64,000 bases of DNA from Bugula neritina (lineage: Eukaryota > Animalia > Bryozoa), in the NCBI GenBank assembly GCA_964035545.1, contig OZ037772.1:12832818-12896817 (forward strand), written 5' to 3'. The notes below the pieces were generated by a model that saw only the letters and a program-made list of their open reading frames with translations, did no database searches and had not been told where the DNA came from. Made by a program: the position numbers and the translations under genes. Below are positions 6,930-55,130 of the stretch, in pieces; within the stretch, counting starts at the first letter, position 1, and each line of letters begins with the position of its first letter.

Positions 6930-9900
6930 ATGTCGACGTTTATTTCTGCATTGAGGAACGGAGCAAAGCTTCTTGAGAGACGTGATGACGATGGGTTTGA
7001 TAGACTGAGTAACAGGTACTCTGTGGGTGAGTTGTCTTCACTATTCCACCAGTTTCAACTTCACCTGCTGTTGATGCTGTCATTTCACTGTTATTTTTTA
7101 AATTACGGTGCAAAGTAGGTAATTGGCTTATTTCTCCCATTGAAATATTTCCTCAGCCAAAGATCTCCGAGACTCTGTGTTTGATGTGCATATTTTAGAT
7201 AAACTCACCTGCAGCTCAGTCTAATATCTCAGATTCACAATCTAATATCTCAGATTCACAGGCTGGTAGGAAAGTAGGGCGTAGTTAATCAGATTAGTGG
7301 AGGGAGATTAGAATACCAGTGTTGGGTAGTGTTGGGTGGGCAGTACTTACATGGAACATGACAGCTAGTCTGTAGAGCAGCAGAGAGCAGCAGCCATCTT
7401 GGGCAGCGCTGCTTCAACTCAATCTTTAGAAGTTATAAGTTACTCTGCAATAAGCCATGAGATTTGTGAATTACCAGCACAACTCAAAGCTCAGTCACTT
7501 CTGAAACAACCCATTTGATGAGCTGCTGGGTTCTGCTTAATGTTGGTCACCACCCAGACATCTGAAGAAGGCTGTACTGTCAGCTCTGGCTAAACTATTA
7601 CATCACCCTCTGACTAATCACTCTCTGAAGGTCAACCCTGGAGGTCGCTCTGTCTGGGTGGAAACCACAGAACTATCATTCTACCATCTTTCAACCAACT
7701 GACACATCCTCTACTTGAATTAGATTAGTTCATAGCCTCAGCTCTCATCACTCAGTCTACGGGCTGTCACTCTACCCTCCCTTCTATTTCAGCTCATAGC
7801 TCTTTCTCCATTTATCTAAATATTTATGTAAGTTAATATTTTTTACATTTTCTTTTGATGAAAGTTTTAAACATTGCCTTTTTATTGCTTCCATTTCCAG
7901 CTGTTGTTATGATGGAAATGTTACACCAGAACAATACCCTTCTACTCCCCTTCCCCCTCCCCCCTCCCCCTCCCTAATAAGTAGTTGTTGTGTTTCAGGT
8001 CTCCTCATCATGATGGCCGTATTCATCAGCACCAAGTCCTACGTGGGGGACCCCATTGACTGCTACCCTCCTAAGGAGTTCGTCTCTCAGTGGAACAAAT
8101 ATGTTGACAACTATTGTTGGGTATGTGTCCCCCTCTATGTGCCCTCCTCTCTCTTACCCTCCTCTATGTACCCTCCTCTCAGTACCCTCCTCTCTCTTAC
8201 CCCCCTCTATGTACCCTCCTCTCCCTTACCCTCCTCTATGTGCCCTCCTCTCTCCTACCCCCTCTATGTACCCTCCTCTATGTACCCTCCTCTCTCCTAC
8301 CCTCCTTCATCCTACCCTCTAGTCTGTTTGATATATAGTATACAATATAGAATACGATGTACAGTGTGTGATGATATACAATATGTGATGTGATATACAG
8401 TACATGATATGATATACTACATGTGATATGATACGGCAAGAGTCTAGACAGTGTATGGGATCCTCTCTGTTTGGGGAGGTAGGAATGCTAATAGATTTTG
8501 TATCCAATTAAAACTCAATTCTGATTCATCAAATTCCTAGGGTGGAGGTTGATATAACATCTCAGCCTCGCCATCTGCTTTTCATTAAATTTAATCTGGA
8601 GTTATGCAACAGAATGGAAACAGTTCTGCTGCCATAAATTAGATTAACATCTTCTCTCTCTCAGTTGGAGCTGAGATAAAAATGTTGTTTTGATTTTTAA
8701 ATTTCACACCCTGTAGAGTTCCAGTTATTTTTAAAGATAATGTTTGTGAATATTATAAGTTGATAGCTGTGAAGTAATGTACTCGTACATGTGTTTAGCT
8801 AAATCATGCTTACTCAGTGCAAACTTAATGGTTGGAAGAGTTTCGTGGTGTTACATGTACCCATTTCGTAACCTTACAGCTGCATCATCCATATTTCTGT
8901 GAAAGAGTGACGTAACTGGTGACCAGGGCATGTAAACTGTGACATTATTGGTCAACCAGGCCAACGTCATGCCCAGTTGACACGCGAATCCTTATTGCTT
9001 TAGCAGGTTCTCCACTGGTTGACTCCTTGTACAAAAACACCATACCAATAACATTGCATTGATCAGAAGTTAATTGCATCATAAATATAGTGATTGGCAG
9101 AGGGTTTTGTAAACAAGCGTGGTGTGTGCGTGCAAAGTGGCATGTCACAGATACCAGCAAGTACCTGCCATTGCTGTCACTCCATCTGTCAACAGCTACC
9201 AGTCCTTTCTCAATCCACTAAATTTAAATTAATTGCTTCACTTCTAAACTCATATTATTTGGTTTCAATTATTTGATTAGTCTTCTATCTAAACACACAC
9301 GAGAGTTTCTGATGAATAGTCTGTCTGTGTGTCCACAATATGCTACTTCCTGTGTCTCTGATTTCATCTGTAACAGTGAATCAGCTTCAAGCACTTATTT
9401 ACTAAGTCGTCTTCAAAACATGTATTTGGGAACATCAGTATACACAAGTATGTCACTAGCAGCTACACTGTGATATAAGTTAGGTACTTGGAGCGCTGCC
9501 AGCTCCAGGTAAGAGGCAGCAGCAGGTAAAAGGCAGCGGTCACAGCCCGCTGTCGAAGTTGATGAGAAGCAGGCTGACAGTAGCTAGTTGTACAATCTGC
9601 TATACTCCTCTCTATGCTAACTCTATTCTACCTGCTAACTCTATTCTACCTGCTAACCCTCTAATCTAGCATCTCAACTACTTGATTACATAACCCTCTT
9701 ACATAACTTACATGCACTGTCTGAGTGGTGTTATATAATAGCATAGCCTCTGTTCTATTGCAGATAGCGAACACGTACTACGTGCCCCTACACCAGGACC
9801 TCAGCCCCACCCTACCCCCAGGAGGATTGCCACCGGGTGGAAACGTAGACTATGCCCAGGAACTGAGCTACTACCAGTGGGTGCCCATCATCCTAGTCTT

Positions 9901-12900
9901 CTGTGCGGCCATGTTCGCTATTCCTGGTGAGTGAACAGCCCTATCTCTCTCTCACACAGAGCACACAGCCCTATCTCTCTCTCACAGACCACACAGCTCT
10001 ATCTCTTAGTATAGACTATAGACTGTTACATACCCTGCTGTGTCTTTGAATGTTCAACATGAATTATCCATTCAGTAGTGGAGAAATTGAAATAGCCTCA
10101 TTTCTTTAATTTTATTATTAAATTTTGGTTTGGTTTAAATTCTCTGAGAGCATACCTTCTACCTCTGAACTATTGGGTGAAATGTAGGGCTGGAGTGTGA
10201 TAAACTATACGTGAATACTTTTCAATCCTTTTGCTTGCAAGAAAAGAAATATCTCAAATTTGCTGCCATGGAGTGAGTCAGCACCCAGTTCTCTGGTTCT
10301 ATGACTTGTCTGTAGATTACAATCCACCAGTCAGACTGCCCTGACACTCCCTGACACTAGACAGTAGAGAGACTTGCTACTCAGCTGGAATAGTAGTTAG
10401 CTGGTGGTTGAGTAGTGGTTTAGTGTGATTAACTTCTAGACGTTAATTGTAGCTGTCAGCTGTATAGATATGTATAGAGATGTGTTGATATATGGCAATG
10501 TGTTAGTAGATGTTCTAACTAGCTAGCTAGTTCCTACAGGTGCTCTTTCTCAGGTTTCTTCCCAGATAGACCCTATTTATTTATTTTGGTACAATACAAT
10601 ATATATTTAATGTGCAATCTATTTGAATATTGTTTAAATGCATGAATATTTAAGCATGTGGGAAGGTCTATCTGGAATGACACCCTTTCTCATTGGTCAT
10701 ACAGCAAGTGCCCCTTAGACACTGCAGGACAGGTGCTCTGTCCAGTTTTGGTGTCAGTAAAATAATCGGCCAACTCTACTCCTACCAGTTAATCCACATC
10801 CTGTTTTGATGATCAATCTGGGTGTCAGTGTTGTGAAATCATAAGATAGAAGTATTAGCAAGATATTGCTATAAGTGCACTATTAGTTCACAGTATCAGT
10901 TTACAGTATTATTGTCCATCTCTGACGCAAATCCAGTAAAGAATAACCCAGTATTTGTTGTTAAACTTTATTTGTAGGAGTTGCCCGCTCTTAGACCCAA
11001 CTACTGGTTTAGTAGCACAACTCCTAATTTAGTTATTGTATTTTGAGTAAATTTCATAGTAAGTGTTGCCAAGGCATGCAAACTATAACTTTTATTCAAC
11101 TTCTCCATCCAACACACCATCTCATCACCTCAACTCTCTTCCTAGGAGTTGTGGTCAACTTGCTTGCCGTTGAAAAGTGATTTTTGATTTTTAAGAACAT
11201 CAAGAAGTTTGCAAAGTGCACTGCTATGAATGTGGTTACAGTTACCAGCTTGCTGGGCTGTAGGAAAGTAAACCCCAAATCCTCTCTCTCCTCTCTCCCT
11301 CTCAGTGTATGGGTTTCAGTGTGTGGGTATCAGTGTGGTGCTGTTTTCATCAAAGATGTATTCTTAGTTTGAAGTTGTGTTTTAGAAGTATCTGATGACT
11401 TCAAGTAGATCTTTGTTACAACTGTAAATGAGAACCTTCAAAGGATATATAATTTGATTAGAACTCAGAGTCGAGTGCATTGTGTGTGATGTTTCTACAA
11501 GCACTTGCTATCCATTGTCACTTCAGTTAGCTCAGGTGTCATAGTTGAGGCTAGAACATGTCATTTACTAGTGTCAGTTTTTGGAGCACCTGCTCTACCT
11601 GTCGGCCTGTTGGCTCCTCTCACTCGCTATGGTTACATCCTGGATGTCAGAGACTGCCAACATCAGCTAATATCTCAGTTCTTGGCAGTTCCTTGCATGA
11701 GTAGAGAGTTTATGTTGTAACACAACCCTCGTGTTTTCTAAGACAACGTTGGCTGCTGCTGTGTTGAAATAACACTGGCCAGGAAAGTGTGGCTCCAACC
11801 ACAAGGGTTGTCATGGCGGTAGCAGCATAGTCTGTGATTGGTGGAAAGTTGCTGACTCTCACTGTTGGCCTTAGATCCCCCCCCCCCCACCTGTGGGTGT
11901 CCCTGGTTGACCCTGAGGTAGTCACCTTCTAGTGAATCGCTCACAGATGTGTTGCAAGGCACTTCCTGTGAAGTAAGTCGTCTGCCATGACTCATCCTGC
12001 CTTCTGCATTCACGGAGACTGCCTTCTGCTTATAACAAAGCGCTCATTCATCATATCTCAGTAGAATGGAATTTCATCAACATTAAATCCTACTTTGTAA
12101 CCATAGCAACCGCTTTATCTCCTGTATTTAATTATTCTGTGAATAATTTGTTATGTATAATGGGCTGAAACTGAAATAACAGATTTAATGAGGCATTCAC
12201 GGTAGCTTTGTGCTCAGAGACTAGGGGCTGAGCTGCTTTAGTGTAGGGATTCTTAGCTCACCCCTCCAACCACAGTTCTAAAGACAATAAAAAACTTGGG
12301 CTTTAAAATTTCTCATTTATTAAATGTGAATGTTTTTAGTTTTTACATTACTGTGTTTGGCTGATGCTTCAACTGAGGAGTTTGACAGACTGGCTGAGTG
12401 AGTGAGTGAGTAGTGAGTGAGTGAGACTGCGCCACGATATTTAGAGTGGAGTCTAGAATCTAGATGAATGACCCTGAACCCATAGACCACCCATAGAAAT
12501 GCTGGTCCACAAGCTATCAGCTTATCTTCCCTACATACAGCTGTCGGACAGGCTGTGGTGGGCAGAGCAAATATTTGCTGATTGCCTTCACTTTCTCTGC
12601 TAATACTTGTTTGGGACGCTAAAAGGTTTTTCTGTTATCTCTGCCCTTCAAACAAACTCAACCCATTCTCTGTGCGTCTGTTTGTGTGTCTGTCTGTACC
12701 TACAGTCTGTCTGTCTGTCTGTTACCTACAGTGTGTCTGTCTGTCTGTCTGTTACCTACAGTGTGTCTGTCTGTCTGTTACCTACAGTCTGTCTGTATGT
12801 CTGTTACCTACAGTCTGTCTGTCTGTCTGTGTGTCTGTCTGTAGCTACAGTCTGTCTGTTTGTGTGTCTGTTACCTACAGTGTATGTGTCTGTACTTACT

Positions 12901-15900
12901 ACTCAGTCAGCTATCTGATCGCTGACCCTGTATCGCTGACCCTTCTATCAACCCAAGACATCTACAGCATTGTTTAGTGACAAGATCTTAGTTTGAAATA
13001 TGATCTGCTAGAGCTCATTGTCTGGGAAAGAGTAACATCTGATAATAGAGTTATTGTGATCTGATCACTCAGTATAAACATTGTAATGACAAGTGATACA
13101 ATCAGCTGAAAGAAATGAGGACATACAATATACACAATATACACAATATACACACAAGTGATGAATTCGCTAACCTTTGTTGTCCTCAGTTGTAATTTGA
13201 TATACTTTGTGGTTTGTGGTTTGACTTACTGCATTATTCAGCATCAGTGTGATTCATCTGTCATTGTGAACAAATATTTTGGCAAATAATAAAATATGTT
13301 TCTAAAATGAACCCCTTTTGGAATTTGTAACTCAAAATAAAATGTTTTGTTGTTGAAATCACCCGGATGCACACAACCAATACATACCACTCATAGTTAT
13401 TCAGACTGAGTCTTCCACAGTAGATACTTCTATATCTGCCCTATATTTCACCTGACCTAGTTCTCTCACAATATTTTAGTTATCTAACATTTTGGATGTT
13501 CATTTGGCTGTAAGCCAAAATTTTATCAAAAGTGGCTGCAAACTTAATTCGTTTTATTTTTATTACTGAAAATATGTGAAGTTGTGGTAAACTTAGCAGA
13601 GAGCGGCTGTATGTACTGGTAGAGACGTTACTAATAGCCTGCTTTCCTATTTCTCTGTGCAGCTCAGATCTGGGCGTGGGCCAGCAACACCGGAGGTTAC
13701 GATGTCGAGGCTATGGTGAGGGCAACGAAGGGAACTTCCAGTCTGAACCCTGAGACAAGAGACAAGACGGTGCAGTACCTGGTGAACCAAATGGACCGAG
13801 TGCTCGGCTACAGGAGACCCTCCCGTGCTCAGGTGAGCGGGGCTCTACCCCCCCCTTCCTGCTGTGTATATAGTGGGCTATGCTGTGTATATAATGTGCT
13901 ATGCTGTGTATATAATGTGCTATGCTGTGTATATAATGTGCTATGCTGTGTATATAGTGTGCTATGCTGTGTGTATAGTGTGCTATGCTGTGTATATAGT
14001 GTGCTATGCTGTGTATATAGCAGGGTTGGGGTAATTGTAATTTGTAATTGTAATTGGTTGTAATTAATTACATTTTTTCAAGTAATTGAATGTAATTTGT
14101 AATTGATGTATAAAAATGTAATTGTAATTGTAATTGTAATTAATTACATTGCTAATGTAATTGAATTTTACAATTACTTTATAATTACAGGTCAATTACC
14201 GTAAAATGGGGTAACATTGGCCGTTTTGAGACTTATTTTGGGTGTCATATGAAAGGATTACAATATTCTTTAAAATTTTTGGATGCTAAATGAAGCTTAT
14301 CAACATATGCACTAAATAAAAGAACCATTTGCAGTTTGGGACTGCTAGATCTCCTGTGGTATTAAAAAAAGTAGGTGGCCAAAGTTACCCTATTTTCGGG
14401 GTAACTTTGGCCGGTGTCGTTATTCTCCATGTAGCTAAAGTTAGCAGCACTTGGAGCTTTTTTAGCCAGTTAGAAATTAAAGAACAACATTATTCAACTT
14501 CATTGCTACAAAAAAAAATTATTTTAGACAAAATGCAAGCTATAATAGTGTAATTATTGCATTGAAACCACAGCTATTCGAGGTACATTGTTAATAAGTG
14601 TAAAAACTTTTGTATATGTATAAAAATCATGTATTTTGCTGGCAACATTGAATAAATCACTGTACAAGTTCAAATTCCATTGAATTTAATCTTAAATTCA
14701 AGTATGCCCTTTCAAACTATAGGCTGTGGCAGTTGTCTGTAGATTTTTTAAATAATGCGTAATGTCTTCAGAATTAACTGTTGCCCATTCCGGTGCTATG
14801 TTTTGGCACAACCTGTGAGACAAGCTATCTTTATGTCTTGACATAAAACTGAGACTCCAGTGATCTTGAGGGTAGTTGCTTTTGAAATGTTGCACTCTTC
14901 TCTCACATTTGTCAAAATAGGTCTTGACTATTATTCGAAAGTCTGTTTTATCTAATGGAAAGCCCCATTGAGCCAGCTTTGTAGTAGGTATGGTCAACAA
15001 TGGCTACCTCCTCTACTTGTGATAACACAGTTTGGTGTCCAGGCTTCAGCTTGTGTCTTCATGCGGCTCTGTTTTGTAGTGTTCCTTTGGTAATATCATA
15101 GTTCTAGCCACTTCTTGTCAAGACTTTCCAGCTGCCAATTCTTGAGAATAAAGCAAAACCAATGATCTCCTCAGATATACCATATCTTGGAGATGTTACT
15201 TTTCTTTAATATTTTCTGAGTATAATTGTCTTGAAAAATACATTTTACAATGCATGGTCAAATTCTTATATAAAAAAAAACATTAAACACAAAATTGCTG
15301 TCTGGGAACAAAAATGCATAATTCCCCATGTAATTATTTCATATTTCGGACTCTAAGTTGTTTCAAATATATAACTAAAGCATTGGGTATAGGTAAATCA
15401 AATGATTGTGCCTTTAGAGAGTAATGTACTATGTGTCTGAAGTAACAGAAAATTCGCAGCGCTGCCAGAAACCTACTTTGGAGTACCATTTAGTCATGGC
15501 CAAAGTTACCCCAAATTCGTCAAAAATTGTACACAGTGAATTCAAGACACATATTTTGATTTTGGATTTCAATTTATTTACCTAAATTACAAATATCCTG
15601 GTTAAAAACTTACCAAAGTTCTTTAATACAAAAAAGAAAATGAGTCCAGCTTTTCTAATGCCTTCAAATAGATTAAAGTTGGACAGCGCTGAAAATCTTG
15701 TTGTCAAACAGGAAATTGAAAATGGCTGACAGCAAGAAGCAGCAAATAAGTATATCAATTATTTTTCAGGAATAGGATGCACCAATCTACAGTCAGTGCA
15801 TATATACAATTAAAATATCTTTAGACTCCATAGATATAGCACCAGCTACATTTTAAACATTTTTTCCAAAGTGGCCAAAGTTACCCCAAGTGGCTAAAGT

Positions 15901-18900
15901 TACCCCATTTTACGGTACTTCAAACTTTTAAAGCTTGAAAAAATCATTCTTTTCCTACCATATTTACTGTCAAATAACAAGTTCAGATTAAGTCAATATA
16001 GTATAGGGTCATTCCATGCTAACTCACCACATGGCCGGTGCCTTTGTGTCTCAGAGTTTGTTCATATTTACACCAAATAGGCCTACATATGTCCTGAGTA
16101 CTCTTCTTAAATATTTTTGGCCTGACAGAAAAATTTTGAGAAATGACTAAACTTGTGGACAAAGGTTAGGGAAAACTTTAAGGAAAATTGGTGACTTTTA
16201 CTTTTAGAGCAACTTATAAAATGTCTATATCTCAACCATTTTTCTAGACTAAGTCTTAAAAATTGCTGTGCGATTTGATAATACCTATCAACTTGCACTA
16301 GTAGCAACACATACTACAGAACAATTTGTGTGCATATATGCTAAACCATCAAATATGGGCAGTTTTTTGTAAATTTTGAAAAAATTTTAAATATCCCCCA
16401 CATCAATTTTTAAGGCTCAGTCTAAAAAACCGGTTGAGATATAGACATTTATAAGTTGGTCTAAAAGTAGAAATCACAAACTTTCCTCAAAAGTTTTCCC
16501 AACCTTTGTCCACAAATGTAGTCATTAATTTTCTCAAAAAGTTTTTGTGTTATGTCAGAAATATTCACGAATAGTACACCGGACATGTGTAAATACAAGC
16601 AAAATCTGAGAAGCAAAGGCGTGGGACCCCTCAAAATTTAGTTGATTTGGCATGGACTGACCCTGTAGTGTCACTGTTGGGAACAAAGGAGGTTCACCAC
16701 TGTCAACATTGCCCCTGGTAGTTGGCCTTAGAAGTGACATTGTATAACTTGTAGTTATCCCTTGTGAGAACAAAAGTAATTGTAATTGTAATTAATTACA
16801 TTACCATGTAATTGTAATTGTAATTAATTACATCACCTTTCAACTGTAATTATAATTGTAATTGTAATTGACAAATCTTCATGTAATTGTAATTGTAATT
16901 AATTACATTTACATGTAATTGACCCCAACCCTGGTATATAGTATGCTATGCTGTGTGTATAGTGTGCTATGCTGTGTATATAGTGTGCTATGCTGTGTAT
17001 ATAATGTGCTATGCTGTGTATATAATGTGCTATGCTGTGTATATAGTGTGCTATGCTGTGTGTATAGTGTGCTATGCTGTGTATATAGTGTGCTATGCTG
17101 TGTATATAGTATGCTATGCTGTGTGTATAGTGTGCTATGCTGTGTATATAATGTGCTATGCTGTGTATATAGTGTGCTATGCTGTGTATATAGTGTGCTA
17201 TGCTGTGTATATAGTGTGCTATGCTGTGTATATAGTGTGCTATGCTGTGTATATAGTATGCTATGCTGTGTGTATAGTGTGCTATGCTGCTGTGTATAGT
17301 GTGCTATACTGTGTATATAGTGGGCTATACTGTACTAGTGAGGGATTAGGGGTATTTGCCAGGTTTTCTAAACTCTGCTCTCTTGTTTGTGGGATCAGAG
17401 GCTATCTCTTGTATTATTCATGAAGGCTACATCTGGCTGTAAAGTGAATAAATCACATGACACTGTAAGAGGCATATCCTGTAGGAGATATTTATAGCCC
17501 GGCTATATTCAGTTGGCCCTCTACCAGCATAAATTAAATTATTTTCATTTTTATCTGTAAACTTATGAGTATGATTTATTCCTGTAACAGAAGTGTTTTG
17601 TAAAACTGGAGTTTAGCTCAGAGCCATGTCCATGCCACCCTGGGATATCACGTGATGACACGAGGGCACCTGTAACACGTGTCTAGCTCAAGTGTATAGC
17701 TGTGTGGCACTTTGTACTTTGACCTGACCCTGCAGGTGCCTGCAGTAATGATAGCCAGTGATCCTTGGGTGGTCTAGCAGTGCGAGTGTGGCAGGGGAGG
17801 AGAGGGGGTGCCCGCAGTGTTTCACCAGTGAGAACTTGAACTATGCTTGACCTTTTATAGCTGTGCCTGTGTCAGCAACATGTTTAATGTTGCAAAAGTT
17901 TGCGTAAATATTATTTCTCTGGTGATATTTGGTGACAAGCAGTGACAGTGCTCTGTTTCTTGTCTACATTCTGATGGGAAATCAATTGTATACATTGGGC
18001 CACCACCAACAGCAGCAGTCTGTTACAGTATGTCTGTTACAGGGTAGTGTACAGAGTATGTCTGTATGTTACAGGGTAGTGTACAGAGTATGTATGTATG
18101 TTACAGGGTAGTGTACAGAGTATGTATGTTACAGGGTAGTGTACAGAGTATGTATGTTACAGGGTAGTGTACAGAGTATGTATGTTACAGTGTAGTGTAC
18201 AGAGTATGTATGTTACAGAGTAGTGTACAGAGTATGTATGTTACAGGGTAGTGTACAGAGTATGTATGTTACAGAGTAGTGTACAGAGTATGTATGTTAC
18301 AGGGTAGTGTACAGAGTATGTATGTTACAGGGTAGTGTACAGAGTATGTCTGTTACAGGGTAGTGTACAGAGTATGTCTGTTACAGGGTAGTGTACAGAG
18401 TATGTATGTTACAGGGTAGTGTACAGAGGATGAAGGCCGGATGTGGCAAGAAGTTTGGAATGTTCCTTTTCTTTGCCTACCTGTTCGTCAAGGTACTCTA
18501 TATCATCAACGCTATTGGACTCATCTTTGTCCTGGACACCATGTTAGGTAGGTCAAGGTTAATACCAGCTCGTTACTATCTGTACATTACAGCTCAGAGG
18601 TAGAAGTCTACGGAGAGAATGTATTCTACAGAAATTAGTACGTTTAATTGTACTTGGAGCTACGGGGAATTGTCTTCCCTCTGCAATGTGTGACCTTGTA
18701 GTGTGACCTTGTCAACGTGTAGCGTGGCGTCTGTTAGACTACTGTTAGCTGTTAGTTTGTGTATTTAGTGATAACAAGGTTTACTCTCACTGCTGATTGC
18801 AACCCTTAGAGCTCATAGCAACGCCAAGATATCATTGGCACTCTGTCATGTCAATAACGCCTTTCAATTTTCTCCTTTGGTACAAAAAAAGTGTTTCTCT

Positions 18901-20238
18901 ATCTGTTTTGATGTTTTCTAGCTTCACTCTGATATATTTGTTCCCATTACAGTAATATTGTTACTTTTACCTGCCTTATGCTGCACTAACTCTCTCGTAT
19001 TGTCGTACTGTGGTACTCTAACTCTCTCGTATTGTCGTACTGCGGCACACTAACTCTCTCGTATTGTCGTACTGTGGTACTCTAACTCTCTCGTATTGTC
19101 GTACTGTGGCACACTAACTCTCTCGTATTGTCGTACTGTGGTACTCTAACTCTCTCGTATTGTCGTGTTGCAGGCACAGGGTATCACTACTATGGCACCG
19201 AGATGCTAAAAGCTCTACAGGACCCTAACTTCTCCGGCTCCGTCAGGTTCCCTTACGTCACGATGTGTGACTTCTGGGTGAGACGCATGGGACACAATCA
19301 GCAGCGTTACACCGTCCAGTGCGTGCTGCCGGTCAATCTCTTCAATGAAGTCGTAAGTTGGCAGCTACATGCATTTCCTGTAGTAATGGCAAACTCAGTC
19401 TGTAGAATTTTGTAACAGTGTCGTGGTATTTGATAAGATAACTCCAAAGTGTGTGGGAATAACTTGCCTCTCATGGTTGCTGTGACAGAAAATATAAATG
19501 ACTATAATTCAATGATTGAAGCTGTCGGCTCTCTAAATGGCCGAGTCAGCAATTAGTCAGTGTGCCACCTTCTCTTCTGAAGGTCTTCGTCGTGCTCTGG
19601 TTCTGGCTGGTCTTCCTGTCCGCTGCCAGTATCCTCGGTCTCCTCCTCTGGCTCGTCACCGCTGCCAACCCCGTCAACAGGACCTTCATCAGGAAGTACC
19701 TGAGGATTATGGGAAGACTACAGAGTATGTACACTCCGTGTTTCTGTTAAGACTTGCTTACTGCATTCACCTGCTTTCCTTTTTCAAACCTTTTTTCTCT
19801 TTTAAAAGACATCTTTGTGTAAATATTTTTTATTTTCGGTGAATAAAACATGCTCTGACACGTGGAGTTGTTTTCTCCGTAGCATTATGTCATATCCTGT
19901 TTGATTGCAGCCACAGAGGATGCCGATGACGATATTAATGACTTTATGCACGGATACTTGCGATTGGACGGCGTGTTTTGTATGCGACTCATACTGAAGA
20001 ATACGAACGACGCCATTGGTTAGTAGAGTATACTTTTCTCTCATTGATCTCTCTGCTATATATAGTGTACTCTTCTCTCATTGATCTCTTCACTAGAAAG
20101 TCTCATCATTTGCTTGCTCTCTCAGGTGGAGAGATCATGGCTGCTCTGTGGGATCAATGGCAACAGAGACGCAAGCCTCGCTTTCAGCCAACCACCGACA
20201 ACCTGCTCCCCGGACGTCAAGCCGATGAGGCCGTCTGA
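6930..20238 (+). CDS. inx: Innexin (gap-junction/hemichannel protein), paralog 1; 9 coding exons, 408 aa
   Basis: Exons 6930-7026, 7999-8120, 9764-9926, 13663-13832, 18415-18547, 19174-19352, 19583-19724, 19911-20018, 20126-20238. All introns are GT-AG with compatible phases; total 1227 nt, open frame. Innexin motifs: DDDGFDRLSNRYS, YVGDPIDC, YVDNYCW, NTYYVP, YYQWVPIIL, FPYVTMCDF, RYTVQCVLPVNLFNE, YLRLDGVF. Four extracellular Cys. C-terminus ...QADEAV*. Confidence 0.96.
8125..8320 (+). repeat. CT-rich minisatellite immediately after innexin 1 exon 2 donor
   Basis: Imperfect repeats of ccctcctctatgtaccctcctctctcttac. Confidence 0.8.
12685..12890 (+). repeat. Compound (TCTG)n / gttacctacagt minisatellite
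   Basis: Visible tandem units in innexin 1 intron 3. Confidence 0.8.
13861..14020 (+). repeat. 21-bp minisatellite, left part (split by the hAT insertion)
   Basis: Unit gctgtgtatatagtgtgctat; continues at 16934. Confidence 0.9.
14199..15915 (-). mobile_element. Internally deleted pogo-like (Tc1/mariner superfamily) transposon
   Basis: TIRs ccgtaaaatggggtaac / gttaccccattttacgg. TA TSD (14197-14198, 15916-15917). Repeated internal ggccaaagttacc motifs. Transposase remnant on the minus strand. Confidence 0.85.
14698..15200 (-). pseudogene. pogo/CENP-B-type transposase N-terminal DNA-binding region (HTH_psq + HTH_Tnp_Tc5), DDE domain absent
   Basis: Frameshifted translation YDITKGTLQNR...KPGHQTVLSQVEEVAIV, then LAQWGFPLDKTDFRIIVKTYFDKCERRVQHFKSNYPQDHWSLSFMSRHKDSLSHRLCQNIAPEWATVNSEDITHYLKNL. 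Confidence 0.8.
16006..16663. mobile_element. Foldback MITE nested in the hAT element
   Basis: Terminal IR gggtcattccatgc / gcatggactgaccc (1 mismatch). Long internal inverted arms, about 16130-16265 vs about 16403-16545. Flanks tata/tgta are a possible imperfect 4-bp TSD. Superfamily unassigned. Confidence 0.7.
16934..17333 (+). repeat. 21-bp minisatellite, right part
   Basis: Same unit as 13861-14020; source of the VLCCVYS pseudo-ORFs. Confidence 0.9.
18029..18428 (+). repeat. 28-bp minisatellite x14 duplicating the acceptor and first 14 nt of innexin 1 exon 5
   Basis: Unit tatgtatgttacag|ggtagtgtacagag. Acceptor copies end at 18042, 18074, 18106, then every 28 nt to 18414. Confidence 0.95.
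18986..19166 (+). repeat. 32-bp minisatellite x about 6 containing CTAAC branch-point motif, upstream of innexin 1 exon 6
   Basis: Unit ctaactctctcgtattgtcgtactgtggtact. CTAAC at 18986, 19018, 19050, 19082, 19114, 19146. The unit contains no AG. Confidence 0.9.
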
Positions 20239-46000: not shown

Positions 46001-47076
46001 GATGGGAGCTGGTCTAATTGAATTTGTTAAAACTAATAAGTTTCTATTAGTACTTTGAATAATTTCCACTAGTAACTAAGTTACATGGCCACTGAGTATC
46101 TAGTATAACATGTTACACATTATACTGGTATTACTACATATTGAATACTATACTACTACATATTGAATACTATACTACTAATATTATTGTACTGATAACA
46201 ATAACAATGCGAGTTAACATGGTAGTATTAATATTATATCTCTCAGCACTCATCTATACATAGCAGTGTGATATGGTGTTGCCTGTTGTAAGAAGTTGTC
46301 TTTTCCTGAACTGACAGTACGAAGTTTCTATCTAAGCTCTGTAATAAGTAAAGCTAGCACATAAGCTACTCTGTGGAGGGTATGCCCCCCTCCCCTCCTC
46401 CAAATACTCTGTGGAGGGTGTGCCTCCCTCCCCTCCCCCAAATACTCTGTGGAGAGTAAAGCTAGGATTGCCTACTAAACCCATCCTCCCTCTCTACTAG
46501 CTCCATTTACTGCTAGCTCATCCCATATCATAAAGTTATTTTGTATCCATAGTAACCAGTAAATATGAGCATTAGCCATATTTCCACAATAATATGTATA
46601 ATATATAACAGCCTGTAGACCTATTTGCTCCCTTCCAGCTCTTAATCTGAAATGTAATGAGCAGTAATTAAAGTTATAATTTATGTATTGGAGAAGCTTC
46701 TGGCTGACGAAGGTTTTGTGGAGAATAAATGTCTCCACCAGGGAGGTTTAATTTTCTCTCAGATGAATTCAGAGACTTGGAAACAGTTGATTAGTTTACG
46801 GAGATTACTTATTGCTTTATATTTCCTTTAAAGTTCAGATATTTTAAGTTTAGTATATTATATAGGAAGTAACATAACTATTACATCATATTTGTACAGG
46901 TATTCAAGAGATGGAGTAGAGCAACAGAATATAATACTTGTAATATTATATAATACATATAATATTATATAATATAATATGATTCTACAGGTAGCTAGAG
47001 CTGTGAAAGAGGAAATAGTAGCTCAGAATATAAGTTAGTGACATCACAGAGGCAATAGTGACATCACAGAGGCAAG

Positions 47077-50000
47077 ATGGTCCTCAGCGACCTGATTGGA
47101 GCGTTGAGAGAAGGGAGTCAGCTGATCTCTAACCGAGATGATGACATGTACGATAGACTTAGCAACAGGTGGTCTATAGGTGAGTGTGACACTTAGTAGC
47201 AGGTGGTCTATAGGTGAGTGTGACACTTAGTAGCAGGTGGTCTATAGGTGAGTGTGACACTTAGTAGCAGGTGGTCTATAGGTGAGTGTGACACTTAGTA
47301 GCAGGTGGTCTATAGGTGAGTGTAACACTTAGTAACAGGTGCTCTATAGGTGAGTGTGACACTTAGTAGCAGGTGGTCTATAGGTGAGTGTGACACTTAG
47401 CAACAGGTGGTCTATAGGTGAGTGTGACACTTAGTAGCAGGTGGTCTATAGGTGAGTGTGACACTTAGTAGCAGGTGGTCTATAGGTGAGTGTGACACTT
47501 AGTAGCAGGTGGTCTATAGGTGAGTGTGACACTTAGTAACAGGTGGTCTATAGGTGAGTGTGACACTTAGCAACAGGTGGTCTATAGGTGAGTGTGACAC
47601 TTAGTAACAGGTGGTCCATAGGTGAGTGTGACACTTAGTAACAGGTGGTCTATAGGTGAGTGTGACACTTAGTAACAGGTGGTCCATAGGTGAGTGTGAC
47701 ACTTAGTAACAGGTGGTCTATAGGTGAGTGTGACACTTAGCAACAGGTGGTCTATAGGTGAGTGTGACACTTGGTAGCAGGTGGTCTATAGGTGTGTGTG
47801 ACACTTAGTAACAGGTGATCTATAGGTGAGTGTGACACTTGGTAGCAGGTGGTCTATAGGTGAGTGTGACACTTAGTAACAGGTGATCTATAGGTGAGTG
47901 TGACACTTAGCAACAGGTGGTCTATAGGTGTGTGTGACACCTAGTAACAGGTGGTCTATAGGTGAGCGTGACACTTAGTAGCAGGTGGTCTATAGGTGAG
48001 TGTGACACTTAGCAACAGGTGGTCTATAGGTGAGTGTGACACTTAGTAGCAGGTGGTCTATAGGTGAGTGTGACACTTAGTAGCAGGTGGTCTATAGGTG
48101 AGTGTGACACTTGGTAGCAGGTGGTCTATAGGTGTGTGTGACACTTAGTAACAGGTGATCTATAGGTGAGTGTGACACTTGGTAGCAGGTGGTCTATAGG
48201 TGAGTGTGACACTTAGTAACAGGTGATCTATAGGTGAGTGTGACACTTAGCAACAGGTGGTCTATAAGTGTGTGTGACACCTAGTAACAGGTGGTCTATA
48301 GGTGAGCGTGACACTTAGTAGCAGGTGGTCTATAGGTGTGTGTGACTCAATAAGCAGATAGCAAAGCAAGGTCAACTGTTCTCATCTGTAAATCAGGTAT
48401 ACAGTGTGAGATCAGTGAATTGTGGTTTAAAACTTTTTTAAAAGCATAGCTTCTTTTGTGACATATCTCGAACACAGGCTTTTCTCAAGTTTCTCTTTTA
48501 TTGAACATACTTTTTCATTTAGCTGTGAGTTGATGTCAGCGATGTAAAGATTGAGAATTTAACATGAAAGCAAAGCATCAAAAACTGATGTTATCTTTAA
48601 GCAAAAAGTTGTTTATGTAAACTTGACGAAGAGCAGAAGCAAAAGACTGATAGAAACTGCTCACGTACATGACAATCTAATAGATAAGTTACTTTGTAGG
48701 TCAGCTAATGTTAAGCTTACACTATATACAATATAATACTCCCAGGGTCAAGGTGAACATGTAAACCAATCACGCAGCTTGTAGCATACTTTCTCCTCTG
48801 CCAGCATTTTTTGGCCAACTTTTAGGCACGCATCCTTAATTTTCACTCATGAGGCGTTTTTCCCACCGAAAGTGTAGATAGTAATCTAATAGTGTGTCTG
48901 AATAATACTGAATACTCCCCCACTATTACCTGTTCCTATCTAGATACACTCAGTCTAGTGTTACAGGTAATTAGCCTGCTATTAGAGTCATTTACATAAG
49001 CAAATCTGGAGAAAAAGAGATGTACAGCCAGCATAATAGAAGGTTCTGGGATCTTGCCAGATTACATAACAATCTTTCTCTGTTTAAAAGTGGTTTGCCA
49101 GCTGATTGACTCTGCATTTTTTGCTTTTACCTGTTCTTAAGTGTCACATATTGAGAGCTATGACATGTGTTGTAAAATACCTGCGTTAAAGTGCCATCCG
49201 CAAATAACAGAAAAGTTTAACACAACTGAAGTGTCACTCAATTGCCCATTTCATGACTTTTGACTAATAGTGACACTAGCAATGGCACTAGCAGTGATAC
49301 TGGTTACTATTAGTGGCATTGAGTACTATTAGTGACATCAGTTACTAGTAGTGACACTAGTTACTTACAGTGACACTAGTTAACTAGTTACTAGCAGTGA
49401 CACTAGTTACTAGCAGTGACACTAGCTACCAACAGTGACACTAGTCACAGGTGGTTCTACCCGCCTCTCACTATGAAACATTTTTTCAATTCACATTCCT
49501 AGCATTGATTCATGTTGAATGTTTTCTACACTTTTCATCAGATTTGATTCTTGCAAAATCTGTGAGTCAACAATTAATGCCTGAGGTCACAGTGATTCAC
49601 ACCCGGCTAATCTAAATAGAGCATTTTATTGGATGTCATCACTCAAACTTTGAACCAGAAAACCCACATTTCCTTGTAAACTTATTATTTGGGTTTCAAG
49701 AGCTAGAGCTGACTGTTTTTCAGTTTCACATCTCTTGCACAACTGAACTACTTATTGTGTGCAACACGGCACTCTCATCTGCTGTTGTACTAATCACACA
49801 TGATAATAAGTAGCCAGTGATCTTAGTTTCTACTTCTGTGGGGAGGGCAGCTGGTAACACAATCTTTCAGAGGTGTCAATTTGTGAAAACATGCTTCTCA
49901 AACAGGACACCTCAACAATAGACAGAACACCATTCCGGCAAACATAAAGTTGCCATTTCAAAAATGAGACATCTAAAATCTGATTGGGTCAAAATAGCTG

Positions 50001-53000
50001 ATGGTAAGCCTCAAGCCTGAACCTATTGAAGGTGGGCTGTTTGAAAGAAAGGGGCATATTCTCATGGTTGCTGTAGATACTGGGACTCATAAAGCTTGCT
50101 TGTCTTCTGAGTGACTTCTACCTGTTAGAACTGGTGTTACAATCATCTACCTCCATCTTGTTTAATGAGTGTAGAGTAGAGTATAGTTCACTGAGTGGGC
50201 CATAGATTAAACTCTATGCTGATAACATGGCATGTCAAATTTCTTTATCTATGTATGATTCATGAAATCTTTTAAAAAGTCCATTTTGTCAGAAGTTTAT
50301 TGCACCCTCCCCTCTTTAACACCATAAGAGATTTTTAGGTTGCAGGTTTCTTTCTGTTTCATCTCAGCATAAGTTGGAAAGTTTGAGAACCAACACAGCT
50401 GAGTGGGGAGTTTCAATGCTCTCACTCTGACAACCAGTAAGCCTCTTGTGTTATAGCATCTGTGAGGGTATAAGAGGGTATTGAATGAATACCCAACCCT
50501 CTTTTGTTACTAGAAATCTGATTACATAATCACAGCATTGAATAATGCTCTGTATGCAGCTGTGAGGAATGTTTAAGTTGTTTAAATGTTTTGAATTTAC
50601 TATTTGATTGCTGGTCTCTGCCATGTTATGTTGAGATGTTATGTTGAGATGTAGTTAACCCTAGCAAGTGTTGAAGTGAGGTAAAGGACAATGTCCTAGC
50701 ATAGCTATGCCCTCATCAGCTCTAACTACTAGAACCTAAGTATTCTCTCAGATGAAATGGAGTGCATCTTAGCATGACATCTGTGTTGGTTTCTAGGAAT
50801 CGCTGCTGGGGCGTAACCATGGTAACCCTCTTTAATCTGTTATAATTGGATTTCACACTTGATTGGGTAAAAAGTTGTTTGTAGAAGGAGTTGAAGCTTG
50901 CTGACATCATTGTAGACTGTGAATCAGGAAACTTAGCTCAGGTTTCTGACATATTGAGGATCTAAACTGTGAAATAATTTAGTCCTCAGAGTGTACTTGG
51001 ACCATAGGCTATAGAGAAGTTGATGTTGTAACATGTTGCATTATTCTATGTATATAAATCAACTTACTAGACTGAGTTCCAACTTCTTACTGGACAGTAC
51101 TGGTAGGGGGGCTGCTTATGCTCCTCGCAACACATGAACACTAGCCAGGTCCTCAGGTTGAGGAAGGAAATATGAATATGCTGTAATATCAAGATTTGGC
51201 TGGTTGAGAAAAATTAATTAGTTACAAAACATAAATTAGCATAATGTTGGTTTGAGCAATTCACACAGCTACTTGGCATAATGAGATAGACATATTGGTA
51301 TTATTATGAGATAGAAATGAAATGTTGTTACGTAATACAGCACATAATATAGACATAATCCTATAACCAATAATATAACTTATATTACAACATGGTTCAG
51401 CTATAACAGCTTGTCTATATTTACACAAAGGGGGAGGCCAGATGGGAGAATAGAGGGGGGCAGATGGGGGGGCAAGATGGGAGAAGAGCGGGTGATTCAC
51501 AGAACATTCTAGAAGGTCAATGTCAGCATGCACTGGCTGAGAGTGACATCGGGGTGACACGTAAACATCGCCTCAACTGTGTTTATAAATTCTTGAAATA
51601 TTTATGATTGAAGTTCAAAGTCAACTCTATGTACGAAAGGCTTCGAATACTGAGACAGGTTAAGGGTGACATATTTGTGTATCTGTTAGACAGACAACTC
51701 CCAAGTATTCAGTGTTGTAAAGATGATATCAACAGAATATAGTAGTTAGAACCCAGCACTGTAACCTTCTCAGTGTTAGGAGACTGGCCACAATGTAACC
51801 CCTACATTACTAGTTACTAGAAGGAATTCTTATGATCAAAGAGAAATATAGAGGGTGCTGGTACAGCTATTTGAGAATTCTAGCCTGTCTGTCTGTGTGT
51901 CTGATATAGATGTCTGTATCTACACTGCCATTCCACAATAACAGTACACTGTTTAAAGTTTGCATCTTCTGTATAAATATCAAAAGCTAACAGTTTTAAT
52001 CCACAATCCTGATATATTACAGTTGTTTAGGCTGTGTGTCTGTCTGTCTGTGCCTAAGCTGGTGGGCGGAGCCAATATTCAAATTATTAGCTGTATTTCA
52101 CTGATGAATTTTTATTTAAAAAATCAAATCGTTTATAATCCAACCAATTAGATGTCTTGAATCCACCATCTTGTTTGCTATACAGGTAGCCTTAGAACCA
52201 TGTGAGCAAACACAGTTTACGGGTGAACTGTAGAATGTGAAGCTAAGCAGCATTCCTCTAATTAGAGTGCATTCTGAGTCATAAAGCTGCCAGCATATTG
52301 GCATCACTTGTCGTCACTAACTGAAACATTAGTTCAGGATATTTATTGGAGTTTTCCTCCCACTAGTCAACTTAGAGAGAGAACAGACAACTCTCAAGTG
52401 TCGTGTATTTTTACTTTACAGGAGTTATCCTATCAATTGCCCTTCTGCTCACTTCACACTCCTATATTGGAGATCCCATAGACTGTTTTGAGCCTGCAGA
52501 ATTTGAAGATCAGTGGGTTGAGTATATGGACAATATCTGTTGGGTAAGTGGCGTTTGTACCAGACTATTTGCATATTAACATCAGTTCTTAGTATTAGTA
52601 TCAGTTATTAGTATTAGTATTAACATTAGTTATTAGTATTAGCATTAGTCTTACTCTTAAATAATCATGTCAAATTTTAGTAGTGACTAATTTGTTTACT
52701 CATATTTGAGGGAATTATTTACCAAAGAATTTACAGATCTGCTTTAATAAATTGAAAATGTGATGCAATACAAATAAAACTGGAATTGTCTTACCACTAA
52801 AAGAATTTGTCACCTATATAATTGACCTATTTTAGAGATACAACTCCACGATATATATCTGTCTATGTTCCACGATATTTCTCTCTGTGTTGCAGGTTTC
52901 CAACACGTATTATGTGCCCCTCAACCAGTCTATCCCCGACCCCGCCCTTGATTTGCCCCACAAACAGGAGTTGCAGTACTACCAGTGGGTGCCCATCATC

Positions 53001-55130
53001 CTCACTATACAGGCTTTCTTCTTCATGATTCCAGGTAAGGGTTTAGAATTCTATTCATTGCTTATGAGTTCCAATGGCTGAATTCTTTTTATGACTTTGA
53101 TTTTCAAACCAAACACATTTATAGCCAGAGTTTTTCTAATTCAGGCCCTAACTTTCCATTTTTTTCATAGAAATGTAACTTTGTGAAAAAGTTCATAGAC
53201 GAACAGAACAGCAGTTTGAGAAAACAAAACCCGTAGCTAGAAGCTTTTGTATCTGTCTGTGTGTCCAACATGTTTGTGATGTCTGTCTTTGTGTCTAACA
53301 TGTTTGTGATGTCTGTCTGTGTGTCTAACATGTTGGTGATGTCCGTCTGCGTGTCTAACATGTTTGTGATGTTTTTTAGGACTGTTCTGGAATGCGGTGG
53401 CGGAAGGTTCTGGATACAACATCAAGGAGATCGTGCAGACGTGCAAAGGGGCGGAGTCTCTGAACCCTGAGACTCGAGACGAGACGATAACCTACCTGGT
53501 CAACAACATGGTGCGCTTCATCAAATACAGGAAACCGTATAAAAAGGTGAGGCTGTCAACTATAGAGTTGGTTTATTCATTTCTTCCGAATCGAATGATA
53601 TTCGCCGTGTATCATATGTTGAACCATGACTTCCTGTTTGTAGCGGAGAATGCCGATTGGGAAGAGATACGGCAAGTTCGTCTTCCTGATGTATATGGTT
53701 ACTAAACTACTCTACATAGGAAATGCTGTAGGACAGATCTATCTACTGGACGTATTCCTTGGTAAGGGTCAAGGTCATAGTTAGATCTCACGCTCTTTCT
53801 ACTATACAATACTAATCTTCTACTACGCAATACTTGACTAGAAACTAAATTGAAATTAATGTAATGCTCTTAAGCGCGTGGGAGTGCAATAAATATTATT
53901 TCAAAACTACATTACCGAAAGCAGAAAAGACGAAATATTAAAGAAAATCTCATCATAGGTTTTTTAGACTTGGTTAATTTTTTTAAACCTGTGTGTATGT
54001 TTATCTAGGTAACCTGTCTGTTTGTCTGTGCAGGTAACGGTTACACACTCTACGGCTGGCAAGCTCTAAAGGACCTGACGAAGGCGTGGGATTGGCAGAC
54101 GTCTCCCATGTTTCCCAGAATCACTTTGTGTTCCTTTGAGATCCGCAAACTTGGTCAGAATATTCACCGCTACACCGTACAGTGTCTGCTCTCTGTCAAT
54201 CTCTTCAATGAGAAGGTAACTCTATATACTATGCTAGCTCTTCAGTGAGAAGGTAATTCTATATAATATGCTAGCCCTTCAATGAGAAGGTAACTCTATA
54301 TAATATGCTAGCTCTTCAGTGAGAAGATAACTCCCTTCACATGGCTGTTTCTCTTTGCAGGCGTTCATCATCCTCTGGTGGTGGCTGGTCTACGTAGCTG
54401 CTATGTCTATCTTTGGGCTGATAGTTTGGGTGGCTACTGCCTCCTCCCCGTACTCTCAGAAAGCGTATGTCAAGAAGTATCTCAAGATTATGGGGCGCCG
54501 CAATAATGATGAGGTCAGATAATATGCTCTCTTACGCAGTATTTAGTTGCTTCTACTGGCTCTTGTATAACTTTAAGAAATTAACTTTTCATGTTTGAGA
54601 AGGAGACAACTTCAAATTTCTACAATTGCCTAATAATGGTACTAAAACTTTATATAATTATAATATATAAGTGTATAATATAATATACTATATTATAATA
54701 TATAAGTGTATAATATAATATAATATATAAAAGTATGATATAATCTGCTATATTGTAATATAGAAATACGTCTGTAAAGTTGAGTTTCCTTTCATACAGG
54801 ATGTTAGCGAGTTTGTGAACGACTTCCTGAGAACAGACGGCGTGTTCACGCTGAGACAGATAGCCAAGAACACAAATGATGCCATCGTAGGAGAGGTATG
54901 AGAATATATCCTATACTAAAGTATGTTACGTAGTAGTAGGAGTCTTTTGACCTTGAACCAGTGACCCTGAACTCGCACATGAAACTTGAAGCTGCATAAA
55001 TCAATCTAATCGGTAGGCATAAGCTTCTGACTTTTAGCCTGAGATTCTGTTGCAGGTGACAGCAGCGTTGTGGGACAAGTATGTGGACAGCCTGAAAGCC
55101 AGGCCAATTGAAGAGGAGAGTTCACCATGA
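47077..55130 (+). CDS. inx: Innexin, paralog 2; 9 coding exons, 384 aa
   Basis: Exons 47077-47179 (MVLSDLIGALREGSQLISNRDDDMYDRLSNRWSIG, not in the ORF track), 52422-52543, 52896-53034, 53380-53546, 53644-53761, 54034-54215, 54361-54513, 54800-54895, 55056-55130. All introns GT-AG; total 1155 nt, open frame. Motifs: YIGDPIDC, MDNICW, NTYYVP, YYQWVPIIL, FPRITLC, RYTVQCLLSVNLFNEK, FLRTDGVF. Confidence 0.96.
47158..48346 (+). repeat. 34-bp minisatellite x35 duplicating the last 22 nt of innexin 2 coding exon 1 and its GTGAGT donor
   Basis: Unit cttagcaacaggtggtctataggtgagtgtgaca. First donor at 47180, last at 48336, exactly 34 x 34 nt apart. Confidence 0.95.
53249..53372 (+). repeat. 30-bp minisatellite x4 containing CTAAC, upstream of innexin 2 exon 4
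   Basis: Unit gtctgtctgtgtgtctaacatgtttgtgat, AG-free. Acceptor AG at 53378-53379. Confidence 0.9.
54201..54333 (+). repeat. 37-bp repeat x3.6 duplicating the end of innexin 2 exon 6 and its donor
   Basis: Unit ctcttcaatgagaag|gtaactctatatactatgctag at 54201, 54238, 54275, 54312. The last copy has GT changed to AT. Confidence 0.9.

Follow-up and report, generated by a model that had tools for sequence, protein, structure and literature searches.

The innexin gene described here raises the question of how a first exon is spliced when its end, together with its donor (5′ splice site), stands in 35 tandem copies, and whether such an array regulates the gene or is carried by it at little cost. 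The gene lies in a stretch of 64,000 nucleotides from the bryozoan Bugula neritina (contig OZ037772.1, positions 12,832,818 to 12,896,817), which is referred to as the window and in which coordinates are given below unless another locus or contig is named. The gene model comprises nine exons and encodes 384 aa (^ marks a splice boundary):

47077 to 47179, plus strand: innexin exon 1, from the ATG to ...TCT ATA G, 34 codons and 1 nt with a phase-1 boundary (gene model, paralogue)
47180 to 52421, plus strand: intron 1, 5,242 nt, with its donor GT at 47180 (gene model)
52422 to 52543, plus strand: exon 2, with the acceptor ttacag^GA (gene model; Pfam Innexin E=4e-10)
52896-53034, 53380-53546, 53644-53761, 54034-54215, 54361-54513, 54800-54895 and 55056-55130, plus strand: exons 3-9 (gene model)

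Exons 2-7 match the Pfam Innexin family (PF00876) colinearly over profile positions 16-293. Since a contig of run X7 (2016, labelled metagenomic RNA-Seq) has exon 2 spliced to exon 3, with a loose end at 52545, the gene is expressed.

The array occupies the initial 1,167 nt of intron 1, and the final 22 nt of exon 1 (47158-47179) double as its first unit. It was detected by TRF as a single tandem array (47157/8-48346; period 34, 35.0 copies, 93% matches, 0% indels, score 2065), and the following features are distinguished in it:

47158 to 48346, plus strand: minisatellite of 35 x 34 nt, gap-free (TRF, in-register reading, unitig depth)
47180 to 47185, plus strand: first GTGAGT donor, the sole donor that preserves the innexin reading frame (gene model, translation)
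47770 to 48007, plus strand: units 19-25, the older copy of a 7-unit block (in-register unit comparison)
48110 to 48347, plus strand: units 29-35, the second copy of this block, 10 units (340 bp) downstream of the first (in-register unit comparison)

Unit 1 is composed of the final 22 nt of exon 1 (coding for L-S-N-R-W-S-I-G) and 12 intron nt, GTGAGT followed by GTGACA. TRF and the in-register reading both bear out a preliminary description of this DNA, made from the letters alone, in which 35 such units of 22 coding and 12 intron nt with a 34-nt period had been recognized. That most copies keep TAG^GTGAGT is also correct: read in register from 47158, the motif is retained in 28/35 units, including all of units 1-18, and is replaced by GTGAGC at units 24 and 34 and by GTGTGT at units 19, 23, 29, 33 and 35. 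Translation across the first donor yields ...SNRWSIGECDT and then two successive stop codons, so that the reading frame ends five codons on, and each additional unit shifts the frame, since 34 cannot be divided by 3. The premature stop that had been predicted for extension of the exon to a downstream donor is thus confirmed.

The assembled array also agrees with the reads. In the source DNA run (X1), where single-copy unitigs have a depth of 118.4, array unitigs were found at depths of 246, 370, 500, 761 and 1340, equivalent to about 2.1, 3.1, 4.2, 6.4 and 11.3 copies, and the assembly holds 2, 3, 4, 7 and 12 units of the corresponding variants. Array unitigs are also present in X7 and X9, runs from two other studies, and variant units occur in runs other than the source run. 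An assembly artefact, one of the reservations of the preliminary description, finds no match in these depths, and the array holds.

With regard to turnover, the array contains thirteen unit variants, and the exonic variant reappears unaltered at units 8, 13, 18 and 26. When the two copies of the 7-unit block are compared, units 19-22 and 24 match units 29-32 and 34 exactly and the pairs 23/33 and 25/35 differ by 1-2 nt, which indicates recent duplication and turnover within the array.

The origin of the unit can be read from a paralogue and from related species. A tandem paralogue in the same window (6930-20181) has a first exon that ends DRLSNRYSVG^GTGAGT (GATAGACTGAGTAACAGGTACTCTGTGG^GTGAGT) at 7027/7028, in the same position and phase as in the array gene, and its exon-end DNA is recognisably homologous. 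Three metagenome contigs of related bryozoans (L034, L035 and L036) contain an exon 1 that is 85% identical and finds its best match in the B. neritina genome in the array exon 1; here the exon ends ...SNRWSIG^GTGAGTTT, has only one donor, and is not followed by an array. These contigs appear orthologue-like, orthology being judged from the best hit only. In another relative contig (L067, 14.7 kb), exon 1 was not found. Because the paralogue and the ortholog-like contigs have the same array-free boundary, ...DRLSNR(W/Y)S(I/V)G^GTGAGT, the exon end and its donor are ancestral; because the latter contigs have a single donor, the array is a lineage-specific amplification of that ancestral boundary, as far as these homologues can tell. 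A dispersed repeat that had invaded the exon was considered as a source and rejected, as the exon part is common to the paralogue and the relatives and the 34-mer is unique to the locus: in the whole genome (216,009,554 bp in 321 records, nine of them large contigs), all 35 occurrences with <=3 mismatches fall inside the innexin array. BLAST of the array gave matches of 66-72% at other loci, to arrays that share ...TAGTAGCAGGTGAGTGTGACA, a likeness that extends beyond the donor consensus.

Several smaller repeats lie close to the exons of the two innexin genes. The array gene has a second small donor array, whose last copy is degenerate (AAGATAAC):

54201 to 54333, plus strand: 37 nt x 3.6, joining the final 15 nt of exon 6 (..NLFNEK) to a GTAAC/TT donor (TRF, gene model)

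An array of 30 nt x 4 (53252-53372) stops 8 nt short of the exon 4 acceptor, the AG itself lying outside it. Directly adjoining the start codon is a perfect 20 nt x 2 repeat (TAGTGACATCACAGAGGCAA, 47036-47075), in which TGACATCA resembles a CRE/ATF-like site. Further into intron 1 (49293-49445) lies a related ACTAGCAGTGACAC motif, which has only two array loci and about 17 dispersed single copies and looks like part of an interspersed element. In the paralogue, an array of 28 nt x 14 (18027-18432) ends at the exon 5 acceptor; each of its units carries TTACAG and GTACAG, which makes it a 3′-end counterpart of the donor arrays. Altogether, 64 tandem arrays cover 13% of the 64-kb window, and tandem repeats make up 13-17% of the sampled sequence (the window and loci L023-L033), about one array per kb. 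This density far exceeds the impression left by the published genome notes, which are silent on such repeats.

Whether the innexin array is an isolated case was addressed by a genome-wide pattern count, in which three perfect octamers had to follow one another at spacings of 10-40 nt:

AGGTGAGT triple: 1629 matches (donor motif)
AGGTAAGT triple: 1695 matches (donor motif)
reversed AGGTGAGT triple: 87 matches (control)
reversed AGGTAAGT triple: 9 matches (control)
AGCTAAGT triple, a GT-destroying single mutant: 263 matches (control)
reversed AGCTAAGT triple: 0 matches (control)

Arrays of the donor consensus (AGGTRAGT) are 6- to about 190-fold commoner than arrays of control octamers, and outside arrays the donor octamers are about as frequent as the controls (4 v 5 and 16 v 8 in 141 kb). 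Mutational bias or selection, beyond random duplication, therefore acts on donors. Counted as distinct loci on contig C1, the two donor motifs form about 18 and 21 arrays vs 4 for the mutant control, and extrapolation from C1 gives roughly 200 or more donor arrays in the genome. On C1 they are concentrated at 0-2.7 Mb and 21-35.5 Mb and sparse between, a clustering that may reflect gene density or recombination rate.

The sampled donor arrays start at real exon ends of unrelated genes. Among the first seven AGGTAAGT arrays on C1, taken unselected, ORFs of 57-500 codons run into the first donor in five, and the remaining two have 20-codon ORFs. Pfam matches of the ORFs at these arrays comprise ankyrin repeats, a caspase domain and, weakly, an immunoglobulin domain, and a P450 exon adjoins a donor array found by a separate GTGAGTGTGACA search. 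The innexin array is thus one member of a genome-wide class, not a peculiarity of innexins; donor arrays are not mentioned in the published B. neritina genome papers. Three further intronic arrays contain the reverse complement of the donor consensus (ACTCACCTG; L027 4019-4537, L031 4141-4381, identical to L009, and L032 4054-4363, identical to L008). They begin 0-30 nt downstream of the real donor of their host gene, which in one case is CoA-transferase-like, and transcripts of them would be complementary to 5′ splice sites.

Comparable arrays have been reported in other animals. In the human F7 gene, the intron 7 VNTR consists of 5-9 copies of 37 bp, and in F7, LMNB2 and PDGF the authentic first donor alone is used (Borensztajn et al. 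2006, PMC1557585). In IFI6 (6-16), with 25 pseudo-sites, and in CBS, whose intron 13 has 15-20 monomers, the first donor and the next two pseudo-sites are constitutively used (PMC1557585). Arrays termed 'mirages' occur in amphioxus (Adh3, globins, TnC and PGBD5) and leave splicing undisturbed (PMC3087553, PMC3902484). Across these precedents, the first donor dominates, exclusively or nearly so (PMC1557585, PMC3087553, PMC3902484).

The F7 array is similar to the innexin array in that the first monomer spans the exon-intron boundary and identical pseudo-donors follow, with units of 37 vs 34 nt. However, it has far fewer copies, follows an internal rather than a first exon, and reiterates a weak donor (UGG^gugggu) instead of the near-consensus TAG^GTGAGT; its first-donor-only splicing is established, whereas the innexin array is known from sequence. 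IFI6 and CBS share with the innexin gene many reiterated donors directly behind the authentic one, but their first two pseudo-sites are used, whereas use of any downstream donor in the innexin gene leads to a stop. The IFI6 (6-16) unit has 12 nt, so that pseudo-site use stays in frame. Like the B. neritina arrays, amphioxus mirages are minisatellite-like tandem duplications of exon-intron boundaries, at the 5′ as well as the 3′ end, and occur in several genes within a single invertebrate genome; a 3′-type array is present in the window as well, in the paralogue. Those of amphioxus show length instability, with apparently normal mRNA splicing. They differ in belonging to another phylum and in having units of up to about 160 nt, where those of B. 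neritina are mostly 14-55 nt; the B. neritina class has moreover been quantified genome-wide, with hundreds of matches, roughly 200 loci and an excess over control motifs. With head-to-tail monomers, a first monomer across the authentic boundary and an ancestral exon part, the innexin array is a large new example of the known exon-boundary minisatellites of the 'mirage' or F7 type.

By analogy with these precedents, the array is probably near-neutral, mRNA being made from the first donor and the rest of the array removed as intron. A 34-bp segment across the boundary of exon 1 and intron 1 would have been amplified in tandem by slippage or unequal exchange, in a genome presumably unusually prone to such amplification, and the array may still be turning over. 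We infer that in functional mRNA the donor at 47180, the first, is spliced to the acceptor of exon 2 at 52422, because unit 1 has the authentic exon context and lies nearest the cap and because the precedents behave in this way; the cap-binding complex favours U1 recruitment to a cap-proximal donor. The other 34 units would be spliced out as ordinary intron sequence, and the next donors would serve no more than a minority of transcripts, which NMD would destroy. Against the use of the first donor it can be said that the argument is one of analogy, that donor arrays exceed their controls, and that array units are abundant in X7. In addition, where strong donors were duplicated in vitro, splicing often preferred the one closest to the acceptor.

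The available RNA data bear on this point as follows. Neither an exon 1-2 joint nor a joint from any array donor is present among the assembled contigs of four runs, a search of contigs only that is not evidence of absence. A 75-aa N-terminal query for transcript-derived protein fragments across the exon 1-2 junction, which covered proteins shorter than full length, matched only genomic read-through ORFs from relatives. In X7, unitigs identical to array units (47621-47684) have depths of 1585-2502, and unique intron just downstream of the array has a depth of about 0.9. Such depths could mean that array RNA accumulates, that the animal had a much larger array, or that DNA was carried over.

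A broader alternative, which we regard as unlikely, would have B. neritina amplify donors at some 200 or more genes, either through mutation coupled to transcription or splicing or because the arrays are retained for a benefit to expression from stacked U1 sites or zero-length recursive splicing, with copy number modulating output. If this were true, the 35 units at the innexin gene, together with the abundant RNA derived from them, would illustrate such a genome-wide donor-amplification system strongly.

Quite unlikely is a role of the array as a set of decoys, in which 34 extra donors would compete for U1 and the spliceosome, a fraction of transcripts that depends on copy number would gain the stop and be degraded, and array length would set innexin output. 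In its favour, 28 donors share a 9-nt core with the authentic one, and use of those downstream leads to a stop within 5 codons with eight introns after it, the premature stop expected of an AS-NMD poison element; the two pseudo-sites used in IFI6 and CBS (PMC1557585) and the abundance of array units in RNA-labelled runs point the same way. On the other hand, the conservation expected of a poison element is missing, as the ortholog-like contigs of related bryozoans have no array; in the F7 experiments the first site met no competition from identical ones downstream; and no alternative junction appears among the assembled contigs. The presence of the same architecture at about 200 unrelated genes argues against gene-specific tuning. 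The balance therefore leans against a dedicated regulator, and a gene-specific one is on balance unlikely, since relatives have no array, similar arrays stand at about 200 or more genes, and the precedents use the first donor.

A recursive mode of splicing is improbable to the same degree. In such a chain, a donor would pair with the AG of a later unit, so that whole units would be removed and a normal mRNA would result at any copy number. The sequence allows it: AG^GT junctions are present in every unit, as the preliminary description had pointed out in likening them to recursive sites, each unit ends TATAG^GTGAGT, and however many whole units are excised, the exon 1 end and its donor junction are restored. 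Dual-specific sites of this kind are described in tandem repeats of human UBC and VCX3A and are used in UBC, and there is an 8.4-fold enrichment of introns that span a whole number of the repeat units around them (Duan et al. 2024, PMC10809524). These sites and 'ratchet' sites resemble the innexin array in having an AG^GT at each unit boundary and in regenerating a donor when a unit is removed. The UBC repeats, however, are coding and their isoforms have been observed, whereas the innexin units are non-coding after unit 1. The likeness to recursive sites stands only for the AG^GTGAGT itself: the 12 nt before each AG (GGTGGTCTATAG) are a poor pyrimidine tract, the site is not conserved in relatives, the intron has 5.2 kb, and neither intermediate joints nor joints between units were seen in the assembled contigs. 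Also against the chain, a metazoan intron of 34 nt would be very short, and the RNA fold of the exon end with four units is no better than that of shuffled sequences (z = -0.73), a result that led us to reject RNA structure as a mask over the downstream donors, too.

Decidedly improbable is a selected platform for U1 recruitment, on which bound U1 would block premature cleavage and polyadenylation in AT-rich introns or boost transcription near the promoter. The genome-wide enrichment of donor arrays over control octamers suits such a role, as does the position of the innexin array, which sits in an AT-rich first intron of 5.2 kb at a distance of about 100 nt from the start codon; the relatives show no conservation, however, and the sampled arrays are anchored at an exon end and not scattered through introns, the pattern that simple duplication predicts. 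Finally, assemblies are error-prone at tandem repeats, but an artefact or a collapsed or expanded repeat is very unlikely, with next to no chance of being correct, given source-read depths that reproduce the assembled count of each variant, array units in the runs of other studies, and a length of only 1.2 kb vs HiFi reads at about 132x (PMC11480708).

Taken alone, the innexin locus is a curiosity of a known kind, large but otherwise ordinary, and the genome-wide abundance of its class is the more interesting lead. For annotation, mis-called exon ends are to be expected at donor arrays. Their excess over control motifs bears on the origin of minisatellites and on intron gain and sliding by AG^GT duplication. 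The choice among identical 5′ splice sites has been argued over for decades from a few human minigenes, with first-come 'scanning', acceptor proximity, and cap or exon definition as candidate rules. In the B. neritina genome, hundreds of natural experiments set identical strong donors against each other for a single acceptor, and junction counts over its donor arrays could test these rules in vivo.
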